64,000 nt of DNA from Bugula neritina (Eukaryota > Animalia > Bryozoa): NCBI GenBank assembly GCA_964035545.1, contig OZ037767.1:17295781-17359780 (forward strand). The letters are read 5' to 3'. Each line of letters begins with the position of its first letter. Within the stretch, counting starts at the first letter, position 1. The notes beneath the pieces are model-generated. The model saw nothing but the letters and a program-made list of their open reading frames with translations. It ran no database searches and was not told the origin of the DNA. Positions 196 to 64,000 of the stretch are shown here, piece by piece. The position numbers and the translations under genes are program-made.

Positions 196-901
196 CTTGA
201 ACTCTGTGTTCTGCTTCATCCTGACACTGCTTAAGGTAAGACACGGTGTTTGTATTTCCTCCTCTTTTTGCAACACTTAAAGGAGTCTCATTCCCTGTGT
301 TGTGAGTTTTGAGTAGCTCTAGTTGCTGTTTGGCACTAAGTTTATCCATCATTAGTTTGATTGTGTCTGTGTGACCTTTCTATGCTGCAATGTATATAGC
401 TGTATCACCATCACCATTTTGTGTCTTGAGTAGCTCCACCTTCTGATCTACTGATACACCATCTATAAGTAGGTATTTGATAGTCTCTGTATAACCTAAG
501 TACGCTGCATCTTGTATAGCTGTATTACCACAAATACTCTGTATATTGAGTAGCTTTACTTTCTGAGCTACTGATACACCACCTAGCAGATATTTGATAG
601 TGCATGTATGTCCTCCCCATGCTGCTCTGTGTATAGCTGTAATTTTATAACTACCCTGTATCTTGAGTAGCTCCACCTTCTGATCTCCTGATACACCATC
701 TAGTAGATATTTGGTAGTGTCTGTGTAACAATTCTCAGCTACACTTTGTATTGTGTTATTCTCTCTCAACAGTTTACATCTCTCTTCTATTGACACGTGT
801 GGAAGACAGGATTTTAAACTTTTGACAATGTTGACCTCTTTAGATCGACCTCTTTCTATTTTCAATAATGTCTCTTGCAGCTTCTGTGTATGTTTCAACA
901 T
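196..901 (-). pseudogene. Copy A of the ankyrin-repeat/CCDC106-like gene: ankyrin exon only (other exons lie left of the window), with an in-frame premature stop
   Basis: ATG at 901 (MLKHTQKLQETL). N-cap, 3 TAI-type 39-aa repeats and C-cap. TAG at 382-380 in repeat 3 (TAIYIAA*KGHTD); the frame continues into ORF 167..352. Donor CAAG|GTGAGT at 196/195, as in the other copies. Confidence 0.8.
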
Positions 902-4108: not shown

Positions 4109-5849
4109 TATGACTGTTGTGCCTTCATTTTCCACCACAGTTTTTGTAATATATATAACTATATAGTAAGTATAGTATGTATTATATAATTATATAACTA
4201 TAGCAAGTACATGTATTATATGTCCGTAATATAACTACATGTAAAGTAAGTGCATATGTATTATATAACTATTATAGAAAGTATATGTAACAAACAAAGA
4301 TTACACAAGAGTGACTATTAGCAAATTCTTAGACAAACATTGTATGAAGTATAATATATTGGTTATTATATGTTCCACTCTTCTATTACACAGCAATTAT
4401 AAAGTAGTACAATAATTCACATATAAACAGCATTATATACTCACATATCTATGTTAGCTTAATTATCCCTTGTACACTGTATGATGCATTATACCATGTA
4501 TCTATAGCTGCAGTACTATGCTAACTGTGACACCTATGTATACACAGCTATTTTGTTTTCTCATAAACCAATCGGAAAGTTATTACCTCATACACTAAAA
4601 ATTCCAGTTTACTGGAAGGCTCCATGGCTATTATACTTGTGCTACGTGATCTGTTAAAGAATTCTGATCAATAATATTATCATAATAGTTATTGATTAGC
4701 ACATATAGTATACATGGGTTGGGTTGCTAGGAGACATGCAAAATAGGTATTATGTATTGTGTGTAAATCATGAGCTAGTATATACAGTCTATGTAAACTT
4801 AGAACAATATGACTAATAAATCCTTATTGTTGGCTTTGAGTACTAAACAAGAAAAATTAGGCTGTGGATTGATGTGAGTTTCATGTTCCTACAATACTAT
4901 TACAGAAATACATATACTGATGTATGTTATACCAGCCCTCTGTATAGTTGTATGATAACTATTCAATAGAGCTGCTGTTCACTATGTCAATATACAAGTT
5001 AATTATATTAGATTGTTATTGTAGACAAAAGAGATGGAGAAGATATCTTATATTTTCTCATGACATTGAATTGTATGACTCACTCAGTGTCTGCAAGGTA
5101 AAAATGACACAGGTAATAATGGTGTAGGTAATTATGGTACAGGTCATAATAGAAAAAAATTCCGAAGTAGACAACAATGGCATATTTTAAATATTATATT
5201 TTGGGGTGTGAGTTTAGGCGTGTGAAATGGAGGACTTAGATTTGGGAATGTTTGTTTAAGTTTGGGGTTGGGGTTTACAAGTTGGAAGTTTGGGGTTTGG
5301 GTTTGGGCTTTGTGAACCTTTAACATCACTGCGCCATTTTTGCCTACTTTTTCATTTTAGTCATTACTATACCTTCGCAATTTCAGTGTTCACTTAACGT
5401 TGACTCACTGATGTAAGAGTACACTTCAACAATATAAAATCGTAATAAAAATACCACCAAGTATGTATACACAGGCTTACAAGAGTATATAATTATGGTT
5501 AAACTTTGCCAAACTGGGAACTTCTAACTTTCAGAGTAGCAGATTTACACATGATGTAGTTGCTGACAGGGAAAGGCAGGTGGTTGACAGGAGTTTAAGT
5601 TATCTCTCCTGTATATATTATATAATATATGTTTCTACTTCATGCAACTTTACAGACGACTAACAGTAAAAGTTATGTGAACCTCAGAGGTTAAATATGT
5701 CCGATAATTGTTTAAACTTTGCTGTGTAAAGTTTTTGTGAGATACTTAGTTGAGTAACATATTAGTTTATTGGTGAAATATTTCAAGCATTGTGAAAAAC
5801 TTACACAAATATTAATGAAGCAAAGTGAATGCAGTAACATAAAGATTTA

Positions 5850-6395
5850 TGATAAATGCGTGATAGAAACGTATATGATAAAGGGGTAACATAAACATAT
5901 ATGATAGATGAGTAATCTGAACATATATGATAAATTTAGTAAAATAAACATATATGATAATTGCAGTAATATAAACTTTTATGACAAATAAGTAATATAA
6001 ACATATATAATAAATAGGTAATATAAACATATATAATGAATGAGTAATATAAATATACATGGTATATCAGTAATATAAACATATATGATAAATGAATAAT
6101 ATAAACATATATGATAAATGAGTAATATAAACATATGTGATAAGGGAGTAATATAAACATATATGATAAATGAATGATATAAACATATATGATAAACGAA
6201 TAATATAAACATATATGATAAAGGAGTAATATAAACATATATGATAAATGAGTAATATAAACATATATAACGGATGAGTAATATAAACATATATGATAAA
6301 TCAATAATATGAACATGTATGATAAAGGAGTAATATAAACATATGTGATAAGGGAGTAATATAAACATATTTGATAAAGGAGTAATATAAACACA
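5850..6395. repeat. 26-bp AT-rich minisatellite downstream of copy B
   Basis: Unit ~aaatgagtaatataaacatatatgat; source of the YYSFIIYVYI-type spurious ORFs. Confidence 0.85.
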
Positions 6396-6727: not shown

Positions 6728-9700
6728 TCACTTCTTCATTCCAAATATAGTAAGTCTTCCAGCTTTGGCTGCTTCTTTAACTTTAGACCAATCAGTGAGC
6801 TCTTCACACTGAGATCCAAGTTCAGACAACCCTCCTTTCTTTGAACTGTCCATCCAGTTTCCAACAACCTGTATAAAGTGTCAACAAGGTGTCAATATAA
6901 CACCATAGTGTCTACATCATACAAGAGAAAGAAAATACAACAATTACAGTGCGAAAAAACGTTTACTAGAATAAAGATACTCAGATATAAACTCACGCAC
7001 ATAATCTACATGATAAACTAATGGCCATGTATAACAAAGGGAACAGGACTCTTAACACAATATATAAAATGGAGTACAAGACGCAACCTCATCTAACTTG
7101 TCTTTATCCAGTACACTCAGATAGTAGATGTATCTGAATCTATCAATAGTTTTACGGCATTTCCCTGTTGGTTTAAGAGCATCATGTATAGATTTGGCTC
7201 TCTTACTAGTAAGTTGTTTATGTACATATTCCATCAACTGTATAGCCTGTTCTGGTGTTTGTACTGCAAGGAACACAGGGTAAAATGCAAATACTTAGAA
7301 TACAATATACGATATCTTTGTACACAATAATATGCTGGTGGCAATTGGTATTTGTGTAGCTGCATAGAAAGTCATGTCTCAATATATAAAAAGAAATTGA
7401 GGCAACACAATTACTGTTGATGACGGAATGTGTGAGTAAACTGTAATACACTATTGAGAGGTGTCTCACCGTATTGGAAACTAGTTGCTACATTAGAAGT
7501 GGAGGGTGTATTGTTAAGAGCCGGAGTATCACAGATTCTCTCTGAAAACATAGCAGAATAAAAGTTTTACATTGGAATCACACAACTTTGTATGATTTTG
7601 CTCCAGCTGTTCTAGTTTGTCACAACAGCATGTCATGTGCTGACTAGAATATGAACTACATAGAAATATGCTCCTGTAATAACAATTATATATTATATCC
7701 TAACTAACTATAGGAGTACTGACATAGCAGTGTATAAATCTCATCACTAAGTCCCTCAATATATTTACATGTATGTACATATGTGATACCAGAAGTAGTG
7801 TAATTACTAACTCATTACTTTAACCAACCTGTTACTAGAGTTCTTTGATCTCCAACAACTACAGAGAATGGAATATCCACTTCACCAAGCATGATTGAAT
7901 CAGTGTACTCATAACGTGCTAGAATAATAATCACAATGAGTTTATAACTGAGAGAGAAATGATGTGTAATATAATAGCATATGATTAATAGCATATATCA
8001 GATAGTTGAATATATGTATATTCGGGTTTAGTAAGACTTTACCATCATTTAAAACAAGACATGTGACTCCAGGTCCACATTCCTTTCCAATCAGAAGGAG
8101 AAAACTCTCAATAGTCATGTCATCTCTGAATGGGAATATCTTATTCCGAGATTTGATTTTCAATGGGAGTTTATTGTATCTAACAGCACCTGTATCAGTC
8201 ATATGAAACAGAATTATAACTAAGTTCAATAGAATAATGAAATAAAAATTAATTGAAAAGTGATCAATCAAATGATGTCACTCACATTGCGTGGTGACAT
8301 CAGGTATAGTCTGCTCAGGTGTGACATCCATACCATGAAGTAGTCCCACAGTCTCGGGTACTTCTTGTGATGGAGGCTCTGTACTAACTAGTGTTTGAGT
8401 ATCTTGTACATGTGGTGGTTCAGAATACTCAGTGGTCATAGGAAAGTCAGCATTGCCAGCATCTGTATCACAATAATATACTTCAATGACAATAAAACAT
8501 TAACTGTTTTAGGATTATCTCCATATGTTTTGTTTTATATTTGAAACTGGAAGTTGTATGAAACCCATCGCATGTTTATGACAATGCAATAGCTATTCCA
8601 TTTGCTGCTCTTTGACCCCAAAGACAATATTCTAAGTATTCATTCTAAAAGATAAAATATAACATACCCATGCTTCTAGAAACTTTGGATGTTGAGGGGA
8701 ATACATCATTATAGAGTGGTCTTTTACTTCCAGATGGTGTTTCTGACTTGTTACTCAGTGTAGTAACTCGAACAGATGAAGTGCTCTCTTGTGATGGAGG
8801 TACTGAACTGCTGCTCTCACTGGCTGTGGTATGGGGTGTCAAGGTCACTGGTACATATGTCAGAGAAGATACATTCTCACTAAAAGATGAGTCAGTGAGA
8901 CCAAGCTGTGACACTGGATGATGAAACTGAGAGTTGAAGTTCTGCCAGTTGTTGAGTGTCGGATTAGCCTCTGGTAGAGCTGCTGGTTGCAAATCTGTGT
9001 ACCCCTTTGGTGTTGGTGTGGGCTGTGAGATGTTGGCATTGTGATACAGTGAGTGTGAAAGGAATGAGAAAGGTTTATTGCTAAGATGTGGTGGATTGAA
9101 AGGTGAATATTCCAGGGAATGTCGGAAGGGTGAAGCATTCTCTAGAGTAAATCGAGAGGGTAGACTGGTGTGGCTGGCTGGTGTTGGTGTCAACTGTGGA
9201 GTAGAAGGTGTGAGTTGGACTGGTTGAGTGGTGGAGTAGTTTGACAAATTCAGCTGTGGTGGGACATGCAGGTTACTTTGTATTGGTATAGTCAAGTCGA
9301 GGAGAGATGGTTGAAGATCTAAAGGAAGTGAATTGTGCTGGTCAGTTACTGGTTGAGGTGTGAACCATCTGGAAGGTTCTAAAGAACCAAATGCAGCAGG
9401 CAGCGGTTGATTGTAGATGAGGTTGCTGTTTTCCAATAAGCTATTAGCTTCTTGAATCTCTAAAATATAAAATATATTGCATTTCCTGAGGTTATTTCAA
9501 AGGCTGTGAGTAACTACAAGCATTTTCTTTCTCCAAGACCATAATACCAAAAAATAATATTAACAAACCAAATTTAAAATCTCTCAGCTAGCTCATACTC
9601 TATTAGCTGTATAGAACAAGTCATGCATGAGCACTGAGATAAAATTATATTCTTATTATCTGTCATTTATGATTAGCAATTAGTAATTATTTTTTTATTC

Positions 9701-11371
9701 ATGATTCGCTTAAAAGTTCATAATTATAATTGGGGAAAAAGTGAATATTTGTTACAATTAGTTTGCATTCTTTGAAACTGCATGGTCATTATTAGCTATT
9801 ATTAATGAGTTAGACTGGTAAAACTGGTGAGAGAAGACAACTACTGACAATATATCTAATGAATAATTATTTATATGCTGTATATATATAACAAATGACA
9901 CTGTCAACAAGCCATTGGTAAGCATAGATGTACAGCTATGAAAAACTCACTAGGTAGAGGGAAATATCACTGTAAAAAAACTAGACATTCATCAGCTAGA
10001 AGGAATTTGTATTGACTAGATTTTCTGCCATAAAACTGTCTGTAAAACGAATTAATGTAAATCTGAAAAGTTGAACTCACCTTGAAATCTGAGTTCTGCT
10101 TCATCCTGACACTGTTTAAGGTAAGACACAGTGTTTGTTTCTCCTCTTCTTTCTGCAACACTTAAAGGATTCTCATTCTTTGTGTTGTGAGTTTGGAGTA
10201 GCTCTAGTTGCTGTTTAGCATTAAGTTTATCCATCATTAGTTTGATCATATCTGTCTGTCCTTTACATGCTGCACTGTGTATAGCTGTATCAGCATATTT
10301 ATCCTGTATCTTGAGTAGCTCCACCTTCTGAGCTACTGATACACCATGTAGTAGGTACTTGATAGTGTCTGTAGGACCTCTCTCAGCTGCTCTGTGTATA
10401 GCTGTACTACCAAAACTGCCCTGTATCTTGAGTATCTCCACCTTCTGATCTACTGATACACCATCTAGTAGATATTTGATGGTGTCTGTATGACCTTCCC
10501 ATGCTGCACCATGTATAGCTGTATCACCACCACTACGACTCTGTATCTTGAGTAGCTCCACCTTCTGATCTACTGATACACCATTTAGTAGATATTTGAT
10601 GGTGTCTGTATGTCCCTTACATGCTGCATCATGTATAGCTGTATCAGCATATTTACCCTGTATCTTGAGTAGCTCCACCTTCTGATCTACTGATACACCA
10701 TCTAGTAGATATTTGATAGTCTCTGTATGACCTCTACATGCTGCTCTGTGTATAGCTGTATGACCATGACTACCCTGTATTTTGAGTAGCTCTACCTTCT
10801 GATCTACTGTTACACCATCTAGTAGGTATTCTATAATGTCTGTAAGACCTCCCCATGCTGCTCTGTGTATAGCTGTATAACCATCACTATCCTGTATCTT
10901 GAGTAGCTCAACCTTCTGATTTACTGATACACCATCTAGTAGATATTTGATAGTGTCTGTGTGTCCCATCAATGCTGCTCTGTGTATAGCTGTATAACCA
11001 TCACTATCCTGTATCTTGAGTAGCTCTACTTTTCGATCTACTGATACACCATCTAGTAGATATTTGATAGTCTCTGTTTCACCTATCCATGCTGCAAGAG
11101 GTATAGCTGTATAACCAACACTATTCTGTATCTTGAGTAGCTCCACCTTCTGAGCTACTGATACACCATCTACTAGGTATTTGATGATGTTTGTTTGACT
11201 TCTCTCAGCTACACTCTGTATTGTGTTATTCTCTCTCAACAGTTTACATCTCCCTTCTATTGACACATGTGGAAGACAGGATTTTAAACTTTTGATAATG
11301 TTGACCTCTTTAGATCGACCTCTTTTTATTTTAGATAATGTCTCTTGCAGCTTCTGTGTATGTTTCAACAT
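6728..11371 (-). CDS. Copy B: 8-exon gene, ~961 aa: ankyrin repeats (8 internal + 2 caps), P/S/T-rich linker, putative beta-grasp domain, CCDC106-like C-terminus
   Basis: Manual splice model, minus strand: 11371-10081, 9459-8668, 8462-8286, 8189-8043, 7918-7829, 7541-7470, 7263-7088, 6868-6728 (2886 nt). All introns GT..AG, phases 1,1,1,1,1,1,0, no internal stops, ends GRLTIFGMKK*. First junction reads ..RFQ E IQEANSLLENSN.. Confidence 0.85.
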
Positions 11372-11772
11372 TTTAATTTCTAAAATTATTATTTTAAATA
11401 CATTCAGCAACATGATACACAAAGGGTACGTGTTGTGTCACTTTGATTTTGCCACTTTTATTATTTATAATATACAATTTTATGTCACAAGCCTTTTGCT
11501 ATATATATACACATTACAGTATATGAACATACTATATACTATACACTAAAATATACTATAATCATATCATGTACTATATACACTAAAATATACTACAAAT
11601 ATATCATACCATACACTAAAATACTATACTATAGAGGCAGGTGAAGTATTAATGGAGAAATTTCTAAAAGCCTGTGTTCTAGTCCACAAATGTAGCAAAA
11701 GAAGTTATGTTCTCGCAAGAATTTCAACCCGCGCCCGAAATTCTGCTTTTACTGGTCCTAAGTGTAATAATA

Positions 11773-13530
11773 TCATACTATATATACACTATAGTATACT
11801 ATACTATGCTATATACACTGATTATACTGATCATACTATACACTAAAGTATACTATACTATGCTATACACTGATTATACTGATCATACTGTACACTAAAG
11901 TATACTATACTATGCTATACACTGATTATACTGATCATACTATACACTAAAGTATACTATACTATCCTATACACTGATTATACTGATCATACTATACACT
12001 AAAGTATACTATACTATCCTATACACTGATTATACTGATCATAATATACACTAAAGTATACTATACTATGCTATACACTGATTATACTGATCATACTATA
12101 CACTAAAGTATACTATACTATGCTATACACTGATTATACTGATCATACTATACACTAAAGTATACTATACTATGCTATACACTGATTATACTGATCATAC
12201 TATACACTAAAGTATACTATACTATGCTATACACTGATTATACTGATCATACTATACACTAAAGTATACTATACTATGCTATACACTGATTATACTGATC
12301 ATACTATACACTAAAGTATACTATACTATGCTATACACTGATTATACTGATCATACTGTACACTAAAGTATACTATACTATGCTATACACTGATTATACT
12401 GATCATACTATACACTAAAGTATACTATACTATCCTATACACTGATTATACTGATCATACTATACACTAAAGTATACTATACTATCCTATACACTGATTA
12501 TACTGATCATACTATACACTAAAGTATACTATACTATGCTATACACTGATTATACTGATCATACTATACACTAAAGTATACTATACTATGCTATACACTG
12601 ATTATACTGATCATACTATACACTAAAGTATACTATACTATGCTATACACTGATTATACTGATCATACTATACACTAAAGTATACTATACTATGCTATAC
12701 ACTGATTATACTGATCATACTATACACTAAAGTATACTATACTATGCTATACACTGATTATACTGATCATACTATACACTAAAGTATACTATACTATGCT
12801 ATACACTGATTATACTGATCATACTATACACTAAAGTATACTATACTATGCTATACACTGATTATACTGATCATACTATACACTAAAGTATACTATACTA
12901 TGCTATACACTGATTATACTGATCATACTATACACTAAAGTATACTATACTATGCTATACACTGATTATACTGATCATACTATACACTAAAGTATACTAT
13001 ACTATGCTATACACTGATTATACTGATCATACTATACACTAAAGTATACTATACTATGCTATACACTGATTATACTGATCATACTATACACTAAAGTATA
13101 CTATACTATCCTATACACTGATTATACTGATCATACTATACACTAAAGTATACTATACTATGCTATACACTGATTATACTGATCATACTATACACTAAAG
13201 TATACTATACTATCCTATACACTGATTATACTGATCATACTATACACTAAAGTATACTATACTATACTATACACTGATTATACTGATCATATTATACACT
13301 AAAGTATACTATACTATCCTATACACTGATTATACTGATCATACTACACACTAAAGTATACTATACTATGCTATACACTGATTATACTGATCATACTATA
13401 CACTAAAGTATACTATACTATGCTATACACTGATTATACTGATTATACTATACACTAAAGTATAGTATACTATGCTATACACTGATTATACTATACACTA
13501 AAGTATACTATACTATGCTATACACTGATC
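11773..13530. repeat. 52-bp minisatellite, ~34 copies (upstream of copy B)
   Basis: Same 52-bp unit. Period confirmed by identical lines at 12241 and 13021 (780 bp = 15 x 52). Confidence 0.95.
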
Positions 13531-13559
13531 ATATTATAAAAACAGGAAACGCTATAATA

Positions 13560-14129: not shown

Positions 14130-14178
<49 letters not shown>

Positions 14179-14540
14179 TGGTAGTGGTAGTGGTAGTGGT
14201 AGTGGTAGTGGTAGTGGTAGTGGTAGTGGTAGTGGTAGTGGTAGTGGTAGTGGTAGTGGTAGTGGTAGTGGTAGTGGTAGTGGTAGTGGTAGTGGTAGTG
14301 GTAGTGGTAGTGGTAGTGGTAGTGGTAGTGGTAGTGGTAGTGGTAGTGGTAGTGGTAGTGGTAGTGGTAGTGGTAGTGGTAGTGGTAGTGGTAGTGGTAG
14401 TGGTAGTGGTAGTGGTAGTGGTAGTGGTAGTGGTAGTGGTAGTGGTAGTGGTAGTGGTAGTGGTAGTGGTAGTGGTAGTGGTAGTGGTAGTGGTAGTGGT
14501 AGTGGTAGTGGTAGTAGTAGTAGTAGTAGTAGTAGTAGTG
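14130..14540. repeat. Compound microsatellite (GTA)n(GTAGTG)n(GTA)n
   Basis: Paralog of 2162-2677 with identical flanks (ttgtataac / cactaatattactag). Confidence 0.97.
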
Positions 14541-19597: not shown

Positions 19598-20299
19598 TAG
19601 AAAAAAATTCCGAAGTAGACAACAATGGCATATTTTAAATAATTATAGAACTTTGGAGTAGGAGTTTAGGGGTGTGAAATGGAGGATTTAGATTTGGGAA
19701 TGTTGGTTTAAGTTTGGGGTTGGAGTTTGCAAGTTGGGGGTGTGGTTTTGGGGTTTGGGTTTGTGAACATTTAACATCACTGCGCCATTTTGCCTATTTT
19801 TTCATTTTAGTCATTACTATACCTTTGCAATTTCAATTTTCACTTAACTTTGACTTACTGATGTAAGAATTCACTTCAACAATATAAAATCTTGATAAAA
19901 CTACTACCAAGTATCTATACACAGGCTTACAAGAGTATATAATTATGATTAAACTTTACCAAACTGGGAACTTCTAACTTTTAGAGCAGCAGATTTACAC
20001 ATGATGTAGTTGCTGACAGGGAAAAGCAGGTGGTTGACAGGAGTTCAAGTTATCTCCTCTGTATATATTATATAATATCTGTTTCTACTTTATGCAACTT
20101 TACAGACGACTAACAGTAAAAGTCATGTGAACCTCAGAGGTTAAGTATGTCCGATAATTGTTTAAACTTTGCTGTGTAAAGTTTTTGTGAGATACTTAGT
20201 TGAGTAACATATTAGTTTATTGGTGAAATATTTCAAGCATTGTGAAAAACTTACACAAATATTAATGAAGCAAAGTGAATGCAGTAACATAAAGATTTA

Positions 20300-20925
20300 T
20301 GATAAATGCGTGATAGAAACGTATATGATAAAGGAGTAACATAAACATATATGATAGATGAGTAATCTGAACATATATGATAAATTTAGTAAAATAAACA
20401 TATATGATAATTGCAGTAATATAAACTTTTATGACAAATAAGTAATATAAACATATATAATAAATAGGTAATATAAACATATATAATGAATGAGTAATAT
20501 AAATATAAATGGTATATCAGTAATATAAACATATATGATAAATGAATAATATAAACATATATGATAAATGAGTAATATAAACATATGTGATAAGGGAGTA
20601 ATATAAACATATATGATAAATGAATGATATAAACATATATGATAAACGAATAATATAAACATATATGATAAAGGAGTAATATAAACATATATGATAAATG
20701 AGTAATATAAACATATATAACGGATGAGTAATATCAACATATATGATAAATCAATAATATGAACATATATGATAAATCAATAATATGAAGATATATGATA
20801 AATGAGTAATATAAACATATATGATAAATGAATAATATAAACATATATGATAAATGAGTAATATAAACATGTATGATAAAGGAGTAATATAAACATATAT
20901 GATAAATGAGTAATATAAACACACT
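20300..20925. repeat. 26-bp minisatellite downstream of copy C
   Basis: Same unit as 5850-6395 with a few more copies. Only ~3 units are present at 38075-38160, downstream of copy D. Confidence 0.85.
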
Positions 20926-21255: not shown

Positions 21256-24200
21256 TCACTTCTTCATTCCAAATATAGTAAGTCTTCCAGCTTTGGCTGC
21301 TTCTTTAACTTTAGACCAATCAGTGAGCTCTTCACACTGAGATCCAAGTGCAGACAACCCTCCTTTCTTTGAACTGTCCATCCAGTTTCCAACAACCTGT
21401 ATAAAGTGTCAACAAGGTGTCAGTATAACACCATAGTGTCTGCATCGTACAAGAGAAAGAAAATACAACAATTACGGTGTGAAAAAACGTTTACTAGAAT
21501 AAAGAAACTCAGATATAAACTCACACACATAATCTACATGATAAACTAATGGCCATGTATAACAAAGGGAACACAACTCTTAACACAATATATAAAATGG
21601 AGTACAAGACAAAACCTCATCTAACTTGTCTTTATCCAGTACACTCAGATAGTAGATGTATCTGAATCTATCAATAGTTTTACGGCATTTCCCTGTTGGT
21701 TTAAGAGCATCATGTATAGATTTGGCTCTCTTACTAGTAAGTTGATTATGTACATATTCCATCAACTTTATAGCCTGTTCTGGTGTTTGTACTGCAAGGA
21801 ACACAGGGTAAAATGTAAATACTTAGAATACAATACACAATATCTTTGTACACAATGATATGAAGGTGACAGCGGGTATTTGGTTTATAGCTGCATAGAG
21901 AACGATATGTCAATATATAAAAAGAAATTAAGACAATACAATTACTGTTGATGACAGAATGTGTGGGTAGACTGTAATACACTATTGAGAGGTGTCTCAC
22001 CATATTGGAAACTAGTTGCTACATTAGAAGTGGAGGGTGTATTGTTAAGAGCCGGAGTATCACAGACTCTCTCTAAAACATAACAGAATAAAAGTTTGAC
22101 ATTGGAATCACCCAACTTTGTATGATTTTGCTCCAGCTGTTCTAGTTTGTCACAACAGCATGTCATATGCTAGTTAGAATATGAACTACATAGAAATATG
22201 CTCCTGTAATAACAATTATATTATATTGAATACTAACTAACTATAGGAACGTACTGACATATAGCTGTGTATAAATCTCATCAGTAAATTCCCCAATATC
22301 TTTACATGTATGTATATATATGATCCCAGAAGTAGTGTAATTACTAACTCATTACTTTAACCAACCTGTTACTAGAGTTCTTTGATCTCCAACAACTACA
22401 GAGAATGGAATATCCACTTCACCAAGCATGATTGAGTCAGTGTACTCATAAAGTTCTAGAATAATAATCACAATGAGTTTATAACTGAGAGAGATATGAT
22501 GTGTAATATAATAGCATATGATGAATAGCATATATCAGATAGTTGAAGATATGTATATCCAGCTAGGTTTAGTAAGACTTTACCATCATGTAGAACAAGA
22601 CATGTGACTCCAGGTCCACATTCCTTTCCAATCAGAAAGAGAAAACTCTCAATTGTCATGTCATCTCTGAATGGGAATATCTTGTTCTGAGATTTGATTT
22701 TCAAAGTGAGTTTATTGTATCTGACAGCACCTGTACCAGTCATATGAAACAGAATTATAACTAAGTTCAATAGAGTAACAAAATAGCAATAATAGAAAAA
22801 TTACCAATCAAATGAAGTCACTCACATTGAGTTGTGACGTCAGGGATAGTCTGCTCAGGTGTGACATCCATATCCTGAAGTAGTCCCACAGTCTCGGGTA
22901 CTTCCTGTGATGAAGGCTCTGTACTAACTAGTGTTTGAGTATCTTGTACATGTGGTGGTTCAGAATACTCAGTGGTCATAGGAAAGTCACCATTGCCAGC
23001 ATCTGTATCAGCATAATAGATGTCAATGACAATAAAACATTAACTGTTTTAGGATTATCACTACATGTTTTGTTTTGCAATTGAAATTGGAAGTTGTATG
23101 AAACACATCGCATGTTTATGACAATGCAATAGCTATTCCATTCCCTGCTTTTTAACTCCAAAGATAATATTCCAAGTATTTATTCCAAAAGATAGAATAT
23201 AACATACCCATGCTTCTAGAGACTTTGGATGTTGAAAGGAATACATCATTATAGAGTGGTCTTTTACTTCTAGATGGTGTGTCTGACTTGTTACTCAGTG
23301 TAGTAACTCGAACAGACGAAGTGCTCTCTTGTGATGGAGGTACTGAACTACTGCTCTCATTGGCTGTGGTATGTGATGTCAAGGTCACTGGTACAGATGT
23401 CAGAGAAGATACATTCTCACTAAAAGATGAGTCACTGAGACCAAGCTGTGACACTGGATGATGAAACTGAGAGTTGGAGTTCTGCCAGTTGTTGAGTGTC
23501 GGATTAGCCTCTGGTAGAGCTGCTGGTTGCATATCTGTGTACTCCTTCAGTGTTGGTGTGGGCTGTGAGATGTTGGCATTGTCGCACAGTGAGTGCGAAA
23601 GGAATGAAAAAGGTTTATTGCTAAGATGTGGAGGATTGAAAGGTGAATATTCCAGGGAATGTCGGAAGGGTGAAGCATTCTCTAGAGTAAATCGAGAGGG
23701 TAGACTGGTGTGGCTGGCTGGTGTTGGTGTCCACTGTGGAGTAGAAGGTGTGGGTTGGGCTGGTTGCGTGGTGGAATAGTTTGACAGACTCAGCTGTGGT
23801 GGGACTTGCAGGTTACTTTGTATTGGTATAGTCAAGTCAAGGAGAGATGGTTGAAGATCCAAAGGAAGTGAATCGTGCTGGTCAGTTACTGGTTGAGGTG
23901 TGAACCATCTGGAAGGTTCTAAAGAGCCAGACTCAGCAGGCATCTGGTGATTGTATGTTGAGTTGTTGTTTTCCAATAAGCTATTGGCTGCTTGAATCTC
24001 TAAAATATAAAATATATTGCATTTCCTGAGGTAATTTTAAAGGCTGTGAGTAACTATACAAGCATTTTCTTTCCCCAAGACATTTTACCAATATATATTA
24101 CCGAACCAAGTTTAAAATTTTTCAGCTAACTCATAATCTATTAGCTGTATAAAACAAATTATTAGCATTGAGATAAAATTAAATATTCTTGTTCTCCGTC

Positions 24201-25661
24201 ATCTATGATTAGCAATTGGTAGTTTATTTATTCATAATTCCATTCAAGTTCATAATTAGAATTGTTACAATTATAGTTTGCAGTATTTTCAACTGAATAT
24301 TATTAGCTATGAATTCTAGTATTATTCCACCCATGTAACTGTACCAGTATATCAGACAGAGAGGAACATTTTGTTGGCTAGACAGAAGTTCATGACAGAT
24401 GATTATAGATAATATTACTTGGTTAAACAGATAAAGCTGATGAGAGAAGACAACTACAGATAATATCAAATGAATGATTATTTAAATATGCAGTGTATAG
24501 CAGCAACACTGTTAACGTTATTATGTTACAAGTCATTGGTGAGCATAGATGTACATGAACTTAAGTCACTATATGGAAGGAAATATCATCTTAAATAACA
24601 GAACGGCTAGACATTCATCAGCTAAAAGGAACATATTATTAGATTTTGTATTGTCTAGATTTTCTGCCATAAAGCTGTCTTTGAAACACAAATTAATGTA
24701 AATCTGAAAAGTTGACCTCACCTTGATATCTGTGTTCTGCTTCATCCTGACACTGTTTAAGGTAAGACACAGTGTTTGTATTTCCTCTTCTTTTTGCAAC
24801 ACTTAAAGAAGTCTCATTTATTGTGTTGTGAGTTTGGAGTAGCTCTAGTTGCTGTTTAGCAATAAGTTTATCCATCATTAGTTGGATCTTTTGTGTGTGA
24901 CCTCCCAATGCTGCATTGTGTATAGCTGTATTACCATCACTACTCTGTATCTTGAGTAGCTCAACCTTCTGATCTACTGATACACCATCTAGTAGATATT
25001 TGATGGTGTCTGTATGACCTTCCCATGCTGCACTGTGTATAGCTGTATTAGCATATTTATTCTGTATTTTGAGTAGCTCCACCTTCTGAGCTACTGATAC
25101 ACCATCTAGTAGATATTTGATGGTGTCTGTATGATCTTCGAATGCTGCCTCATGTATAGCTGTATCACCATAACTACCCTGTATCTTGAGTAGCTCCACC
25201 TTCTTCTCTACTGATGATACACCATCTAGTAGATATTTGATAGTGTGTGTATCACCTATCCATGCCGCAAGAAGTATTGCTGTATAATCATCACCATTCT
25301 GTGTCTTGAGTAGCTCAATTTTCTGATGTACTGATACACCATCTAGTAGGTATTTGATGGTCTCTGTATGACCTCTCTTGGCTGCATTGTGTATAGCTGT
25401 ACTACCATCACTACTCTGTATCTTGAGTTGCTCCACCTTCTGATCTACTGATACACCATCTAGTAGGTATTTGATAGTCTCTATATGACCTCTCTCAGCT
25501 ACACTCTGTAGTGTGTTTTTCTCCCTCAACAGTCTACATCTCTTTTCTATTGACACATGTGGAAGACAGAGTTTTAAGCTTTTGATAATGTTGACCTCTT
25601 TAGATCGACCTCTTTTTATTTTCAATAATGTCTCTTGCAGCTTCTGTGTATGTTTCAACAT
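21256..25661 (-). CDS. Copy C: 8-exon gene, ~844 aa, same architecture with 5 internal ankyrin repeats
   Basis: Exons 25661-24722, 23999-23208, 23002-22826, 22730-22584, 22455-22366, 22072-22001, 21791-21616, 21396-21256 (2535 nt). Exons 2-8 have the same lengths as in copy B and the splice sites are conserved. The exon 7 donor is weaker (GTTTTG). Confidence 0.82.
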
Positions 25662-26596: not shown

Positions 26597-26838
26597 ATGT
26601 ATACTATAGAATAATATATAATATAATTATATCATGTACCATACACTAAAATATACTATAAATATATCATACCATACACTAAAATATTATAATGTAAAGG
26701 TAGGTGAAGTATTAATAGAGAAATTGATAAAAGCCTGTGTTCTGGTCCACAAATGTAGCAAAAGAAGTTATGTTCTCGCAAGAATGTCAACCCTCGCCAT
26801 AAATTCTGCTTTTACTGCTCCTAAGTGTAATTATATCC

Positions 26839-28391
26839 TACTATACAGTAAAGTATACTATACTATGCTATACACTGATTATACTCATCATACTATACAC
26901 TAAAGTATACTATACTATGCTATACACTGATCATACTGATCATACTATACACTAAAGTATACTATACTATGCTATACACTGATTATACTGATCATACTAT
27001 ACACTAAAGTATACTATACTATGCTATACACTGATTATACTCATCATACTATACACTAAAGTATACTATACTATGCTATACACTGATCATACTGATCATA
27101 CTATACACTAAAGTATACTATACTATGCTATACACTGATTATACTGATCATACTATACACTAAAGTATACTATACTATGCTATATACTGATTATACTGAT
27201 CATACTATACACTAAAGTATACTATACTATGCTATACACTGATTATACTGATCATACTATACACTAAAGTATACTATACTATGCTATACACTGATTATAC
27301 TGATCATACTATACAGTAAAGTATACTATACTATGCTATACACTGATTATACTGATACTACTATACACTAAAGTATACTATACTATGCTATACACTGATT
27401 ATACTGATCATACTATACACTAAAGTATACTATACTATGCTATACACTGATTATACTGATCATACTATACACTAAAGTATACTATACTATGCTATACACT
27501 GATTATACTGATCATACTATACACTAAAGTATACTATACTATGCTCTACACTGATTATACTGATCATACTATACACTAAAGTCTACTATACTATGCTATA
27601 CACTGATTATACTGATCATACTATACACTAAAGTATACTATACTATGCTATACACTGATTATACTGATCATACTATACACTAAAGTATACTATACTATGC
27701 TATACACTGATTATACTGATACTACTATACACTAAAGTATACTATACTATGCTATACACTGATTATACTGATCATACTATACACTAAAGTATACTATACT
27801 ATGCTATACACTGATTATACTGATCATACTATACACTAAAGTATACTATACTATGCTCTACACTGATTATACTGATCATACTATACACTAAAGTCTACTA
27901 TACTATGCTATACACTGATTATACTGATCATACTATACACTAAAGTATACTATACTATGCTCTACACTGATTATACTGATCATACTATACACTAAAGTCT
28001 ACTATACTATGCTATACACTGATTATACTGATCATACTATACACTAAAGTCTACTATACTATGCTATACACTGATTATACTGATACTACTATACACTAAA
28101 GTATACTATACTATGCTATACACTGATTATACTGATCATACTATACACTAAAGTATACTATACTATGCTATACACTGATTATACTGATCATACTATACAC
28201 TAAAGTATACTATACTATGCTATACACTGATTATACTGATCATACTATACACTAAAGTATACTATACTATGCTCTACACTGATTATACTGATCATACTAT
28301 ACACTAAAGTCTACTATACTATGCTATACACTGATTATACTGATCATACTATACACTAAAGTCTACTATACTATGCTATACACTGATTATA
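26839..28391. repeat. 52-bp minisatellite, ~30 copies (upstream of copy C)
   Basis: Same unit with copy-specific variants (gctctacac, aagtctact). Confidence 0.95.
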
Positions 28392-31242: not shown

Positions 31243-34200
31243 ATGGCAGGAGAATCAACTCGACAGAGAGAAGGTGAGCCTGATATCACTATAGCTTTAA
31301 AAGGCCCAGTGTGGCAAAAAGAAGAGGCCTACAGATATCGCCTGAAAGCTCCTACTTTTACCGGGTTAGAAGACGTAGAAAAGTTTGTCCAGGAATTCAA
31401 AGAGGTGATAGACCACACCCAATGGCCACCCAGAGTGGCTTTGATCTAGCTACGAAGAGCGTTAACAGAACAGGCCAAGCCGTGCGGACTAAGAACTAGC
31501 ATAGACGGAATCTTTGCTGCGCTACGGGCCCGTTTTGGTATTTCCGCAATAGGTGCCAGGACCCGCTTATAGAGGTTATGCCGCACTTCACAGACATCTC
31601 TACAAAAACATGCGGCTACGATGAAGAAACTGGCACAGATCGCGTATAGCGACTCACCAGTGCAACACTAAGAACGCTATACATATGTTGCTTTTGTTCA
31701 GTCATTGAATGACTTGGGTCTACACCACCAACTACAAGCAAAAGGGTGGAAAACGCCTTGGGAGCAGGAGAGGCTCATTTACTAGCAACTCAACTACATA
31801 AAGGACAGGGAAGCCCTCAACCACTTGCCATAAACGCCCCGGAAGGACCCACAGAACCGCTACCCCATTTTCAAGCTGTGGCGACCCCATCCGGCTCCCC
31901 CTAGGATGCGGAGGTCAATCGCATGGCGGGGATGTTAAAACAGTTGGTAACGATCCTCATCCACTCCAACTCCATCAAACCAAAACCGAGGCCTCGGCGG
32001 TTGCCTATGGCACCTACGATTCCAGGTTGGGGGTGCGATACTCAGGACCGTCCCCGCATGGAACACCCCCGGAATAAAAGAGTGTTTAACTACCACTGCC
32101 CGCGGATGCATTCCCTCCCCGTGGGCAAAAAATAAAGAATCATTGAGGAACACACCGCCGGCTAACTGTGCAGACGCGACGGTATGCTCCTCACGAATGG
32201 CAGGTACCACGTAGGACCAGCCGACCAGAACAGCAGCCAGGTACCTACTCTCTGCCACCCACCAACCGTTTCCTCTGGTTACCAGACGAAGAAGAGCCAA
32301 CCACTGACCTAGAGCCGGAAAGCCAAGTGGAAAGCTCGAACCCTCCCCCGAAACCCTATCCGGGTAGAACCGAACACGCGGTGGGGTGAAGGTACAACCA
32401 CACGGAGATAGTTATTTCCTACCAGGGAAGGTGGCGAGTAAAACTGCCATTTTCCTGCTAAACTCCGGTTGTACTACAAACCTTCTCAGTCGCAGGGTCT
32501 TCGAGACGCTGCCCCGCCAAGACAGGGACAGAGTACGGCCATACACGGGGGAACACAGCCCTCTGGCAGACTGGTCGTGTATCCTCTTCTACGGTATCGT
32601 AGAACTCACTGGGTGTGTCCAGGACCAATTCATAGAGGAAACATTTGCCATTAGCCAGCTCGAAGAAGATGCTATACTCGGCATGCCCTTTTTGAAACGC
32701 CATAAGTGCCGCATCGATTTTAGTAAGTCGACGGTACTGATGGCCGGACGAGAACTCACTTGTGTGGATAAGTCCGGCCGCCCTCTAGTAGGCAGTGTCC
32801 AGGTGGTGCGGAACCGCACCGTACTGTGGCGCTCCCGGACTACTATTCACTGCAAGGTAAATGATAACTGGATCTCTGGACTCAGGGTGGTAGAAAGCGC
32901 ACGAAAGAATCCAACTTGCTAACAGTCTAAACCAGCTGACCGCGTGAGGAGAGATCTTGTTGCAGTGCGTAAACCCCTTTACAGAGTCGATAAAAATACC
33001 CGCCGAATTCATGCTGGGCCGTTTCTACTCTGCCCAAGAAGAGGACGTGGGCCCGTCGCTTGGGGATGCGACGGAAGAGCCCCCACGGCACCCGCAAAAA
33101 AGGCGGGAGACCGTCCCACCACACATCAAGGAGTTGTAGGAGACAGGTTGTGGTGGCGGTGCAAGCAACGAGGAACGTCAGGCTATGGCAAAGTTGTTAG
33201 GCGACTACGGTGATGTGTTCAGCAGCAGAGATCATGGCGTGGGACTGACCGGAGCTGTCAGACACAAGATACCGCTGACTGCAGGAAGGCCGGGAAATAG
33301 TAGTAGCTTACTACAGTAAGTCTCTCTCACCCACTGAACGAAATTACTGCACTACCCACAAGGAATTACTAGCAATACGTATCATGCCTCCCTGATTTGG
33401 TTGTGCAAGAGAGCGGAACCGTCCAGTCAGGTCGCCCGGTGGCTCGAAATCCTAGACGAGTTGTTTTACCGGATCGAACATCGACCGGGCAAGAGGCACA
33501 GCAATGCGGATAGCTTGAGCCGACAACCTGAAGGGGGCTGTAAACAGTGTCTCAACATCGAAAAGAGGGATGGAGGTCCCCCACGGTACAAGTTAGGGGC
33601 ACTGGCTCACCACTGAGCACGGTTTGACTGGGACCAGGGTCAACTCCAACAGACAGTGGACGAGACTTTGGAGGCGGTACAAAACCTCCGCGCCAACCCT
33701 GTTTTGGCTGAGAACGTCCGGGAATTGAGGAGGCTTCAGGAGAACCTCCCTGGAATAGTAGCCGATGTATATCGGACCAAAAAGGAAAAGCGACGACTCA
33801 GCGAAGAATAACTCAGGCAGGGATGCGCCGAATTCCGGCTGTTCTGCCAACGTTGGGACTCACTGAGGATCGGGCAGGATGGTCTGCTAACCATTTATCT
33901 AGCTGCCAACAGCAGACATCCTGAGAGAAAGTGGGTGATCTGTCCCACTGCCATACGCCGTGAGTTAATCTGGAACACTCACAAGCAGGCTCACGCAGGA
34001 GTCCAGCGGGTGATCTCCAAATCACAGCTCCGGTGGCACTGGCCCAAGATGCGGCGTGATGTCTAACTCAGAATAAAGCAGTGTAAAAACTGCCAGGCCA
34101 GCAAGCATGGCCGTCTCCCTGGTGAAGCGGGACGGCGAAAGTTATATGCTGGACAGCCGTGGCAAGTAGTAGCTGTCGACCTGGTCGGACCCATGCCCCT

Positions 34201-35330
34201 GACCCCCAGAGGCAACAGTTGGATCCTAGTATTAACCGGCCACTTCACCAGGTAAGCTGACGCTCTGGCAATCCCAGATACTTCAGCTCCGACAGTGGCC
34301 AGGGTGCTAGACCAACATGTATTTTGTTAATCTAGGTTTCCCTGAACGGATACATTCTGACCAAGGCGCTCAGTTCCAGTCTCAACTGATGAGCGACCTC
34401 TGCCGCCACTGGGGAGTGAATCAGAGCAAGACCACTCCCTACCACCCTGAAGGTAACGGGGTGGTGGAGCGCAATAACCGGGTGCTAGGTGATGCGCTCT
34501 GGATTCTACTCCTCGGACGTAGTCAGGAGGAATGGGACACGGTGTTGCCGCAAGTCATGCGCGCATTCCGTAGCACACCACACACCAGTACTGGTGAGAC
34601 CCCAAACCTCTTGATGCTCGGGAGAGAGACTCGGGTCCCTGACCATCTTACCTACCATGTTCAGGGCAAAACAGCTCGATTCACGAGTATGCCAGTGAAC
34701 TAGTGGAACGGATGAGGGTCGCACACAAAATGCTGCAAGAAAAGCAGTGACAGGTGTGCGCGAAGACTACGAAGAGCCACCCCTCTATCAGACAGGAGAT
34801 TGGGTGTAGATGGTCAATTACCGTAGGCGTCGCAGACAGGCGGCTAAATTACAGCCCAAGTTCTTGGGACCCTACGTAGTAGTTGAGGCTATGCCCAACC
34901 ATACGGTTACAAGATCGAGCGCTCAGGACAAGTGTCCATCCAAAATGAGGCTCGCTTGAAGCCGTATTGGGCTAGCCCAGACGCAGTGGGAGAAGCCCCT
35001 CGTATGTTGGAGCCCAGGAGGCAGACGGCAACGCGTGGGCGACAGTGGCATGGTCCTGAGTAAGAGGTGGTCATTCCGCGGGAAGAAGACTTGGTGCGAG
35101 ACGAGCGACAAATTCCATCCACAGAAGTGCGCCCGCCGCCTCCGACTCCAGGTCTGACACCATCACTTCCAGAAACCGAGCCGATTCCGGAAGTGCAAAC
35201 CCTCACAGAGGGAGGGGCTCCATCCGGAGAACACGAAGAAACAACCACTGCTGAGAAATCAGAATCACCGCCAGTGGAACCTAATAGTCCACCAGTGTAT
35301 CTCAAACTCACAATTGATACTGAACGTTGA
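31243..35330 (+). pseudogene. Disrupted gag-pol of Gypsy element 1
   Basis: Fragments YRLKAPTFTGLEDVEKFVQEF (gag), KVQPHGDSYFLPGKV (protease), integrase core. Many stops and frameshifts. RT and most of RNase H are deleted at ~33280-33286. Confidence 0.88.
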
Positions 35331-35388
35331 GTATGTCGCTAAATACCAAGTTCTCTGGTAAGCCTACCTAAGTCTTGTATTCTTATCT

Positions 35389-36470
35389 ATAGAAACAGGC
35401 TTGATGCCAGTTAATTTTGAACTAATAAATCTGATTGAATCAGAATTACTGGAGACCACGTCTAATGTGAATGACGACTAGGACATAGTAATGGCCGATG
35501 ATCTGTTAGATCTCGAGCTAGAAACTATCATTCTTGGTCAGTCTACACGTAGCAAACCGGTCTCTCGAGTGCCTTATAAAAGTTGTGACCCTCAGACTAC
35601 TAACAGTTTATCGTCACTAGAATTATGTTGTAAAGATCTATCTCGATTTGACAATAATTCTACTTTTGTAGACGACACTCGCTCTCTCGTCTCACAAGGG
35701 ATGCCATCTTTTGAGATGGCCTGGAATCCAAAACCCCTAGTACCTACAAAATCTGATCGGAAACTACTTCACGCACTGGAAACAAAATCTTGCTGGATTA
35801 CACCAGCAACTGAGAAGGAGATACACAGGTATAGAGGCGACGAAGATAATACGGAGTGTCGCCTATGCCAACAGCACTTTACCACGCACCGCACGCTACG
35901 GGTCCACCTCCCACAGCAATTTGGGACAACCTTCTGTTCCTCTGGTGAATACAGTTACCACAGGCACTATATCCTGAGGCATCAGAGAACAATGAATTGT
36001 TTTCCCGGCCACCCCTACAATGTGGATGAGAGCTCTTACCCCACTTTCTTAGATCTTGTACGGCCCTTCGTCACAGACCCCGCTCGACTGGCGCATCTTA
36101 CCCAGGGATTCCCGCTCCCCGACCTATCACCCCAGGACCTACCACCAAAATCCCTGGCTATTCCACCAACTCACCTCCTACCTCCATCCGTCGTCCTAGG
36201 ACCATTCCCCGCGTTCTGTTACAATGCATAGATACTCAACCGTATACTCTTCCTCCTCTCCTTCCCCCGGCGGATCGGAAAAGACGCAGGTCACACCACT
36301 CCCCTTCACGTCATTGTCCTCTGGTCCGCAACTTGCGGGAAGTCGAATTGAGAGCTAACAAATTAAAAAGGGAAGTCCATCGTTTAGCCCACAGGATTAG
36401 GGAGGCAGCCAGCGAGTTACAATCTCTCCAAGACTCTATCAACAAACTTAAACGCTCTACTAAGGACTAG
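35389..36470 (+). pseudogene. Extra ORF3 of Gypsy element 1: C2H2 zinc-finger + coiled-coil protein (disrupted)
   Basis: Lies between integrase and PPT. CRLCQQHFTTHRTLRVHLPQQ..GEYSYHRHYILRHQRTMNC, ending RNLREVELRANKLKREV..SINKLKRSTKD*. Collinear with ORF3 of element 2. Confidence 0.75.
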
Positions 36471-43883: not shown

Positions 43884-44031
43884 ATACTTTAAAGGTAGGT
43901 GAAGTATTAATAGAGAAATTGATAAAAGCCTGTGTTCTAGTCCACAAATGTAGCAACAGAAGTTATGTTCTCGCAAGAATTTCAACCCTCGCCATATATT
44001 CTGCTTTTACTGCTCCTAAGTGTAATTATAT

Positions 44032-44475
44032 CATACTATACACTAAAGTATGCTATACTATGCTATACACTGATTATACTGATCATACTATACACTAAAG
44101 TATACTATACTATGCTATACACTGATTATACTGATCATACTAAACACTAAAGTATACTATACTATGCTATACACTGATTATACTAATCATACTATATACA
44201 CTAAAGTATACTATACTATGCTATACACTGATTATACTGATCATACTATACACTAAAGTATAACATACTATGCTATGCACTGATTATACTAATCATACTA
44301 TACACTAAAGTATACTATACTATGCTATACACTGATTATACTGATCATACTATACACTAAAGTATACTATACTATGTTATACACTGATTATACTGATCAT
44401 ACTATACACTAAAGTATACTATACTATGCTATACACTGATTATACTGATCATACTATACACTAAAGTATACTATA
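44032..44475. repeat. 52-bp minisatellite, ~8-9 copies (upstream of copy D)
   Basis: Same 52-bp unit. Confidence 0.9.
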
Positions 44476-46625: not shown

Positions 46626-46683
46626 GGATAGGAATACAAGACTTATACTGGCTTACCTGTGAACTTGGTATTAGCTTCCATAC

Positions 46684-63600: not shown

Positions 63601-64000
63601 AGTATATACTATGATATAATATAATAAACAACACACTATATAATATATACTATGATATAATATAATAAACACCACACTATATAATATATACTATGATATA
63701 ATATAATAAACACCACACTATATAATATATACTATGATATAATATAATAAACAACACACTATATAATATATACTATGATATAATATAATAAACAACACAC
63801 TATATAGTATATACTATGATATAATATAATAAACAACACACTATATAGTATATACTATGATATAATATAATAAACAACACACTATATAATATATACTATG
63901 ATATAATATAATAAACACCACACTATATAATATATACTATGATATAATATAATAAACAACACACTATATAGTATATACTATGATATAATATAATACACAA
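54611..64000. repeat. 41-bp AT-rich satellite array, ~229 copies in the window, running off the right edge
   Basis: Unit caacacactatata(a/g)tatatactatgatataatataata(a/c)a; period 41 (caacacac at 54671 and 54712). Confidence 0.97.

Follow-up and report, generated by a model that had tools for sequence, protein, structure and literature searches.

Diversified 39-residue ankyrin arrays in a tandem gene family of the bryozoan Bugula neritina, with signs of selection on a predicted binding face

A 64,000-nucleotide stretch of the genome of the bryozoan Bugula neritina (contig OZ037767.1, positions 17,295,781 to 17,359,780; hereafter the window) contains four minus-strand ankyrin-repeat genes (hereafter genes A–D), each of which encodes an array of 39-residue units. 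Variability among these units is concentrated in eight columns and, in two subfamilies, the codons of these columns change their amino acids faster than they accumulate synonymous substitutions. We consider it likely that diversifying selection acts here on a recognition face to which a constant module is joined, and that the genes make up a germline-encoded repertoire of intracellular binders. The subfamily that comprises genes A–D is referred to below as S1, and its sister subfamily, found like the other family members by genome searches of the 216-Mb assembly, as S2; more distant members are labelled S3 and S4.

The ankyrin unit and its variable columns

The arrays have a period of 117 nt (39 amino acids) in all units, and the canonical ankyrin length of 33 residues is not seen. 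Pfam searches of genes B and D return Ank_2 (PF12796) at 213–240 bits (cut-off 27.3) and Ank (PF00023) at 179–183 bits (cut-off 21.1), and the ankyrin signature G-x-T-P-L-H-x-A-A-x-x-G-H is present in register, as x-T-A-I-H-x-A-A-x-x-G-H, in nearly all units (hereafter TAI-type units). In sequence alignments with PDB entries, of which NOMPC is the best match, columns 1–27 correspond to canonical positions 1–27 and the six extra residues are gapped. An AlphaFold2 model based on gene B and nine family sequences (predicted local distance difference test score, pLDDT, 94; predicted template modelling score, pTM, 0.87) resolves each unit into helix 1 (columns 7–14), helix 2 (columns 17–23), a third helix (columns 29–36) and a nine-residue loop (columns 37–39 and 1–6). 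According to this model, the third helix, which is eight residues long, would be formed by the six extra residues. The best Foldseek matches are espin, ankyrin-R/B and designed ankyrin repeat proteins (DARPins), with expectation values (E) down to 2.6e-15.

Ankyrin units of 39–40 residues with an extra helix segment also occur in P0040 (on an ENA contig of 1.27 Mb), P0085, P0117, P0114, P0112 and P0077. The origin of these proteins is uncertain, and some of them are perhaps bacterial or protist. Their presence suggests that the three-helix variant is distributed more widely than the bryozoans and is not unique to this family.

Column statistics for the window were taken from 20 internal units. 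The hypervariable columns are 1–5 (in the loop), 10 (in the middle of helix 1) and 13–14 (where helix 1 ends); the framework comprises the 31 remaining columns, of which columns 16, 18 and 30 are moderately variable. These eight columns, i.e. 20% of all columns, hold 58% of the pairwise amino acid differences. Amino acid identity is 24% in the variable columns versus 86% in the framework, and nucleotide identity is 59% versus 90%. Diversity at codon positions 1, 2 and 3 amounts to 0.47, 0.53 and 0.23 in the variable codons versus 0.064, 0.063 and 0.18 in the framework codons; third positions are thus about equally diverse, and first and second positions differ seven- to eightfold.

This pattern agrees in most respects with a first-pass annotation of the locus, which had counted 24 TAI-type units in four gene copies (three in gene A, eight in B, five in C and eight in D, all on the minus strand) and had placed the variability in the hairpin, in the residue that follows the TAIH motif and in the pair that follows the AA motif; every variant that it listed is present. 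Its description of the framework as nearly invariant even in DNA was overstated: the framework is ∼90% identical, and its pooled proportion of synonymous differences (pS) is ∼0.2.

The same columns stand out across the family. S1, S2 and S3 all have columns 2, 3, 5, 13 and 14 among their most variable ones, and columns 1, 4 and 10 vary too. Columns 10, 13 and 14 lie on a single stripe of helix 1 (i, i+3, i+4). Column 39, the equivalent of DARPin position 33, is invariant in S1 and mildly variable in S2 and S3.

DARPins carry their randomised residues at positions 2, 3, 5, 13, 14 and 33. Six positions per repeat, all on the concave face, are varied in such libraries (PMC3602593), and the ANK-N5C library randomises positions 2, 3, 5, 10, 13 and 33, with a crystal structure in which the beta-turn and helix 1 make up one continuous binding surface (PMC4308713). 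The first-pass annotation had equated the variable sites with the concave-face positions randomised in DARPins, and the alignment register bears this out at positions 2, 3, 5, 13 and 14 for DARPins and at positions 2, 3, 5, 10 and 13 for ANK-N5C. From this register, the eight columns are predicted to form the canonical concave ankyrin binding face. The Bugula arrays resemble the two designed systems in having a fixed consensus scaffold, variability at register positions 2, 3, 5, 10, 13 and 14 and a fold that matches DARPin structures. They differ in being natural, evolved sequences, in that positions 1 and 4 also vary and column 39 is invariant in S1, and in having a 39-residue unit and up to 21 internal units, compared with 2–5 in DARPins and ANK-N5C.

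Codon evolution within the arrays

Codon alignments were prepared from internal units (44 in S1, 85 in S2 and, in S3, 32 of the 36 that were cut), among which 36 units are unique in S1 and 75 in S2. They were analysed with Nei–Gojobori counts, with a self-written fixed-sites MG94-F3x4 likelihood model on IQ-TREE trees and with a site-wise grid version of that model. By Nei–Gojobori counts, the non-synonymous divergence (dN) of the eight columns relative to the synonymous divergence (dS) of the whole unit is 2.6 in S1, 4.1 in S2 and 3.1 in S3. In a tree-free comparison of independent nearest-neighbour pairs, the non-synonymous proportion at the variable columns relative to the synonymous proportion over all columns, pN(V)/pS(all), is 1.5 in S1 (p=0.01), 2.75 in S2 (p=2e-12) and 2.1 in S3 (p=2e-4).

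The likelihood model points in the same direction for S1 and S2. When the eight columns are given a separate synonymous rate, their ratio of non-synonymous to synonymous rates (omega) is 2.7 in S1 (p=0.006) and 4.1 in S2 (p=3.5e-9). If the synonymous rate is shared, the omega values are 2.3 in S1 (p=3e-7), 4.8 in S2 and 2.7 in S3, with p-values from 3e-7 to 4e-35; on trees built from the framework only, they are 3.8 in S1 (p=6e-5), 3.1 in S2 and 1.2 in S3. As a safeguard against a circular choice of columns, the DARPin positions were also set a priori as a partition, for which omega is 5.4 in S1 (p=5.5e-4) and 3.8 in S2 (p=1.5e-7). In the site-wise version, the non-synonymous rate (beta) significantly exceeds the synonymous rate (alpha) only in columns 1–5, 10, 13 and 14, and additionally in column 19 in S2. 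The framework has an omega of 0.38–0.6, and many of its sites are individually negative. The first-pass annotation had proposed a codon alignment with site models as a check; carried out here with self-written models, it does not yield a dN/dS of 1 or below in S1 or S2. Its broader claim of diversifying selection on ligand specificity is supported, with reservations: omega exceeds 1 at the eight columns in S1 and S2, S3 is close to 1, and the reference to ligand specificity is still an interpretation.

The main rival explanation is relaxed constraint combined with concerted evolution. The eight positions would then be unconstrained (omega ∼1) and would retain old differences while the rest of the unit is homogenised, with no selection for diversity. 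Ankyrin surface positions are generally the least conserved ones, which fits this explanation. However, variable codons alternate with framework codons over a span of 42 nt and therefore share genealogies with them, and despite these shared genealogies non-synonymous divergence at the variable codons exceeds synonymous divergence within the same units by a factor of 2–4. Likewise, relaxed constraint accords poorly with third positions that are nearly equal in diversity (0.23 versus 0.18) next to first and second positions that are seven- to eightfold apart, and omega = 1 is rejected in both S1 and S2, also for the columns defined a priori. We regard relaxed constraint as rather unlikely.

Several points weigh against diversifying selection, and the first three of them speak for relaxed constraint: (i) the eight closest independent pairs in S1 show no excess (pN(V)/pS 0.9, n=8); (ii) in S3, the variable codons have a synonymous rate that is raised ∼3-fold and, under this rate of its own, omega is 1.1 and not significant, which suggests that diversity at the variable codons is not always selective; (iii) the caps are near-neutral (omega 0.8–1.2), with an omega of 0.78 for the N-terminal 82 codons and 1.18 for the C-terminal part of exon 1, and together with a stop codon in gene A this means that part of the family may be decaying; (iv) the likelihood code is home-made, not PAML or HyPhy, and works on trees from 117-nt alignments of sequences that undoubtedly recombine and with single-nucleotide steps, all of which can inflate omega; (v) the assignment of columns to a surface relies on the sequence register to designed libraries, not on model coordinates; and (vi) the RNA evidence described below comes from short contigs that are 90–99% alike, in runs whose RNA status is given by their label only.

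A third explanation is targeted mutagenesis, in which a reverse-transcriptase- or deaminase-based mechanism alters these codons. The window does contain reverse transcriptases of long terminal repeat (LTR) retrotransposons, and the raised synonymous rate in S3 would be in line with such a mechanism. By contrast, the synonymous rates of variable and framework codons do not differ in S1 and S2 (likelihood-ratio test 0.2 and 0.3), the changes involve all four bases and mainly affect codon positions 1 and 2, no copy of the repeat that could act as a template is seen and the reverse transcriptase is that of an ordinary Ty3/gypsy element. Targeted mutagenesis is thus extremely improbable.

Diversifying selection on the recognition face is the reading that we carry forward.

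Gene architecture and family turnover

The interval 10081–11371, which the first-pass annotation had singled out, coincides precisely with exon 1 of a longer gene. Judging from splice sites and reading phases, the open reading frame (ORF) in this interval is only the first exon of a six-exon gene (gene B). The donor reads AAG/GTGAGT, with position 10081 as the last exon base, and the mechanical ORF stops 29 nt beyond it. This donor is retained in genes A–D, and the intron 1 acceptor, 621 nt downstream, is likewise conserved. Every exon border of gene B is GT–AG, and the exons measure 1291, 792, 147, 90, 176 and 138 nt, which sum to 2634 nt or 878 codons, a length derived from exon lengths and phases only, the exons having been searched singly. 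Exon 1 begins with a start codon at 11371, followed by a helical N-terminal region of ∼60 amino acids, an N-cap unit, eight TAI-type units (39/40 amino acids) and a C-cap unit. Two B. neritina protein models (P0001 and P0003) also join ankyrin units to a Ser/Pro-rich sequence that is homologous to exon 2. The predicted parts of the four genes, all on the minus strand, are as follows.

196–901, minus strand: gene A, exon 1, with three TAI-type units (ORF 167–943); the downstream exons lie outside the window
10081–11371, minus strand: gene B, exon 1, supported by its translation, Pfam Ank_2 (E=4.8e-64), a donor conserved in A–D and the AlphaFold2 model (pLDDT 94)
10304–11125, minus strand: gene B, internal units B1–B7, used for unit coordinates, column statistics and site tests
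10187–10303, minus strand: gene B, last TAI-type unit (B8), with a variable face like that of the other units and diverged helices 2 and 3
9460–10080, minus strand: gene B, intron 1 (621 nt, GT..AG), which holds the read-through tail and the stop at 10052–10054 that closes the mechanical ORF
8668–9459, minus strand: gene B, exon 2, a Ser/Pro/Thr-rich linker of 264 codons, probably disordered, in phase with exon 1
8043–8189, minus strand: gene B, exon 3, start of the C-terminal module, supported by GT–AG sites and phase, with 95–96% nucleotide identity in genes C and D
7829–7918, minus strand: gene B, exon 4, C-terminal module
7088–7263, minus strand: gene B, exon 5, helical part of the C-terminal module, with 46% identity to the C-terminal region of Watersipora subatra XP_067945400 (tblastn E=1.5e-10)
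6728–6868, minus strand: gene B, exon 6, with a TGA stop at 6728–6730; the terminal part of the exon can be aligned with the Watersipora C-terminus
24722–25661, minus strand: gene C, exon 1, with five TAI-type units, intact
21259–23999, minus strand: gene C, exons 2–6, in segments 23206–23999, 22567–22734, 22364–22450, 21613–21801 and 21259–21396 (from blastn homology and frames; borders approximate)
42010–43300, minus strand: gene D, exon 1, with eight TAI-type units, intact
38512–41285, minus strand: gene D, exons 2–6, in segments 40492–41285, 39847–40014, 39648–39734, 38866–39054 and 38512–38649 (from blastn homology and frames)

Gene A has an in-frame TAG at 380–382, located at hypervariable column 13, where other units have TGG (Trp). 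It is probably a pseudogene or a null allele, and a consensus error could also account for the stop.

Runs labelled as RNA sequencing (RNA-Seq; X2 and X4) contain contigs that cover exon 1 and the start of exon 2. Their depth is zero over 9487–10008 and 11401–11574, where DNA runs have depth, and their contigs terminate at 10084 and 9461, adjoining both splice sites of intron 1. Given that the contigs are 90–99% alike, this indicates that members of the family are transcribed and spliced, not gene B specifically. Public runs that carry the label 'symbiont metagenome' contain contigs with at least 99% likeness to the window. At position 11353 (codon 6 of gene B), RNA-Seq-labelled contigs diverge into another 5′ end, with a start located two codons ahead of the sequence in common. 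This alternative end matches the N-terminus of the metagenome protein P0146 and suggests a transcribed paralogue or allele with a shorter N-terminus.

The C-terminal module, which lies behind the Ser/Pro-rich linker, comprises ∼180 conserved residues. Among genes B, C and D its omega is 0.30, and that of the linker (exon 2) is 0.50. No significant Pfam match was obtained for exons 2–6 or for the C-terminal half of the Watersipora protein, and exon 1 matches ankyrin families only. CCDC106 (PF15794) was considered as a candidate and rejected: with the Watersipora C-terminus it yields 18.5 bits (E=0.0018), below the cut-off of 30.2, and the window exons give no match. A PDB profile search with the module reaches a best E of 1.1; ESM Atlas features yield only unnamed clusters at 0.83, and a region search returned the query alone. 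The AlphaFold2 model of the Watersipora C-terminus (pLDDT 41) is too poor for a fold search.

The Watersipora subatra protein XP_067945400.1, named 'ankyrin-2-like', contains 14 units with an exact 39-residue spacing, and its columns of highest entropy are 2, 3, 10, 14, 34, 1 and 13. It shares with gene B the variable columns and the order of parts, i.e. units, a Ser/Pro-rich region and a C-terminal region like that of exons 5–6. It differs in belonging to another cheilostome lineage, in its diverged scaffold and in carrying only an automatic name. Sequence comparison shows it to be a true homologue of the whole gene.

In the assembly, S1 consists of nine genes at C3:17.26–17.41 Mb, including the four of the window, and S2 of nine genes at C3:15.17–15.89 Mb and C2:32.25 Mb, and the more distant members (S3 and S4) number at least five genes. 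Their open frames span 205–945 codons with 2–21 TAI-type units per gene. The scaffold is near-fixed within each subfamily and specific to it, and the variable columns are common to all. Mean pairwise identity of the units is 0.70–0.75 in genes B, C and D, 0.85 in a neighbouring gene of 20 units and 0.64–0.80 in S2, and two neighbouring genes show higher-order repeats of three or four units. Sequence corresponding to exon 5 is found 3–4 kb downstream of 17 of 17 S1/S2 genes, with 94–100% amino acid identity. Tandem duplication and unequal recombination drive the turnover of both repeat units and whole genes, and as a result the scaffold codons stay alike.

In one S2 gene (L038, with 17 internal ankyrin units), the exon-5 homologue at C3:15403888–15404076 contains one TGA, and the gene is possibly broken despite its long open ankyrin exon. 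Three S3 genes (L045, L046 and L047) and the B. neritina protein KAF6034198 (P0030) have a scaffold of their own and the same variable columns. KAF6034198 ends in a different, unannotated C-terminal extension of ∼250 residues, and no exon-5 homologue was found next to the S3 genes.

A word-based homologue search returned only three B. neritina hypothetical-protein models and generic ankyrins. Giant ankyrin proteins made up most of the output of an exhaustive profile search, from which relatives with a 39-residue period were chosen by equal stretch lengths in query and target. In our best explanation, the genes form a bryozoan-specific multigene family.

Within the window, the first 45 kb are a tandem macro-repeat with a unit of 14.5–17.7 kb, and every unit contains one minus-strand ankyrin gene and three satellites. 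This layout raises the possibility that the ORFs are relics, i.e. decaying macrosatellite copies that encode no working protein. The in-frame TAG of gene A, the TGA in exon 5 of one S2 gene, the satellites and LTR retrotransposons that flank the ankyrin locus and the high omega of the caps are all in keeping with decay. On the other hand, 17 genes of a genome with 30–37% guanine plus cytosine (GC) have kept frames that are open over as many as 945 codons, splice sites and phases are conserved, the C-terminal module evolves under the low omega given above and the framework has negatively selected sites. Coverage in the RNA-Seq-labelled runs is confined to exons, and Watersipora has a homologue of the same architecture. 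Decay of the whole family is, on balance, very improbable.

The arrays could alternatively have a structural or scaffold role, as spacers or springs, with variable positions that tune solubility or self-association. A ten-fold range of repeat number and the lack of a signal peptide or known effector domain would suit such a role, and some ankyrin arrays, e.g. that of NOMPC, are mechanical. Mechanical arrays, however, are noted for a repeat number that stays stable and for low rates of indels (PMC5100051), which is the opposite of what is seen here, and a spacer would not be expected to have an omega above 1 restricted to the canonical binding face. We consider a structural role quite improbable.

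Interpretation, known systems and locus context

In the diversifying-selection reading, the gene product consists, in order, of a short helical N-terminus, 2–21 units of 39 residues, a Ser/Pro-rich linker and the C-terminal module of ∼180 residues. Eight codons per unit gain amino acid changes 2–4 times faster than synonymous ones, and the arrays would constitute a putative germline-encoded repertoire of intracellular protein binders. The specificity of these binders may be diversified by selection, the probable targets being ligands that change rapidly, e.g. proteins of microbes, viruses or transposons or non-self proteins of conspecifics, and the invariant C-terminal module may provide a common output.

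Bryozoans are colonial and fuse with or reject their neighbours, and Bugula has a vertically transmitted symbiont. To our knowledge, next to nothing is known of bryozoan immune and allorecognition genes. A bolder proposal, which we put forward as a tentative one, is that the genes form a cheilostome ankyrin-based, germline-diversified intracellular recognition system, with uniform arrays, binding faces shaped by an arms race and a constant output module, as one arm of a wider sensor–effector set. If true, it would be an animal counterpart of the repeat domains of fungal NOD-like receptors (NLRs), lamprey variable lymphocyte receptors (VLRs) and KRAB zinc-finger arrays, on a different scaffold. 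If the arrays are receptors, they offer a concrete candidate gene set with an eight-residue face per unit. The natural 39-residue three-helix unit could serve as a ready-made alternative scaffold for binder engineering, and the conserved C-terminal module represents a new domain that merits characterisation.

Recognition systems built on repeats with a fixed scaffold and positively selected contact residues are known from fungal NLRs, plant leucine-rich-repeat receptors, lamprey VLRs and KRAB zinc-finger proteins/PRDM9. The KRAB zinc-finger and PRDM9 genes combine clustered genes, homogenised repeats, selected contact residues, a conserved non-repeat module and a rapid turnover of repeats. Compared with this general picture of them, the Bugula unit is a protein-binding ankyrin rather than a DNA-binding zinc finger, and its constant module is C-terminal and unannotated.

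The nearest parallel in the literature is found in ankyrin repeats of fungal NLRs that are highly conserved internally, e.g. those of Podospora anserina Pa_3_8560 (Dyrka et al. 2014). Such fungal repeats are polymorphic in repeat number and have five positions under positive selection on their concave face (PMC4986451). The Bugula family resembles them in its near-identical scaffold, in its varying repeat number (here 2–21 units among paralogues), in selection at inner-helix and hairpin/loop positions and in the concerted evolution inferred for both. It differs in being from an animal, in its 39-residue three-helix unit and in a constant part that is a C-terminal module behind a disordered linker. 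Pfam detects no NACHT, NB-ARC or N-terminal effector domain in exons 1–6; lacking such a nucleotide-binding oligomerisation domain (NOD), the Bugula family is not an NLR family. The fungal repeats are defined by at least 85% unit identity over at least 100 residues, compared with 70–75% in the genes of the window, 0.85 in the one neighbour and 86% in the framework columns alone.

Repeats with such high internal conservation occur in only 0.8% of metazoan ANK/TPR/WD proteins (PMC4986451), and a metazoan survey has linked concerted repeat evolution to host–parasite conflict (PMC5100051). Our literature searches returned no description of bryozoan ankyrin families and no such ankyrin case for any animal.

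Outside the macro-repeat, the remainder of the window consists of two GC-rich Ty3/gypsy elements and a 41-bp satellite; an Rfam scan of the whole window gave no match. The two Ty3/gypsy-type LTR retrotransposon copies are located at 31900–36300 (plus strand) and 45500–52000 (minus strand) and have 51–58% GC, versus 30–37% in the host. One of them keeps open frames for reverse transcriptase/RNase H (48302–49888) and integrase (47233–48108). The 41-bp satellite array (54611–64000) extends over at least 9.4 kb, with 228 copies and 96% matches, and continues past the end of the window; it has 17% GC and a strong strand skew.

Other satellites accompany the ankyrin genes. A 52-bp satellite is found directly 5′ of each gene start (11783–13533, 26835–28391, 44030–44475 and 1302–1555), with up to 34 copies, 97% matches and a copy number that varies among the macro-repeat units. 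A 26-bp satellite lies just 3′ of the last exon of each gene (5828–6393 and 20278–20921). The hexamer microsatellite GTAGTA/GTAGTG (68–86 copies, at 2162–2676 and 14133–14540) gives rise to spurious poly-Leu and Leu-Pro ORFs. Upstream of gene B, a short element at 11666–11748 is present in very high copy, with a summed contig depth of 5,000–96,000 in four of four runs and many loose contig ends at 11688 and 11729–11740; it is probably a dispersed repeat.

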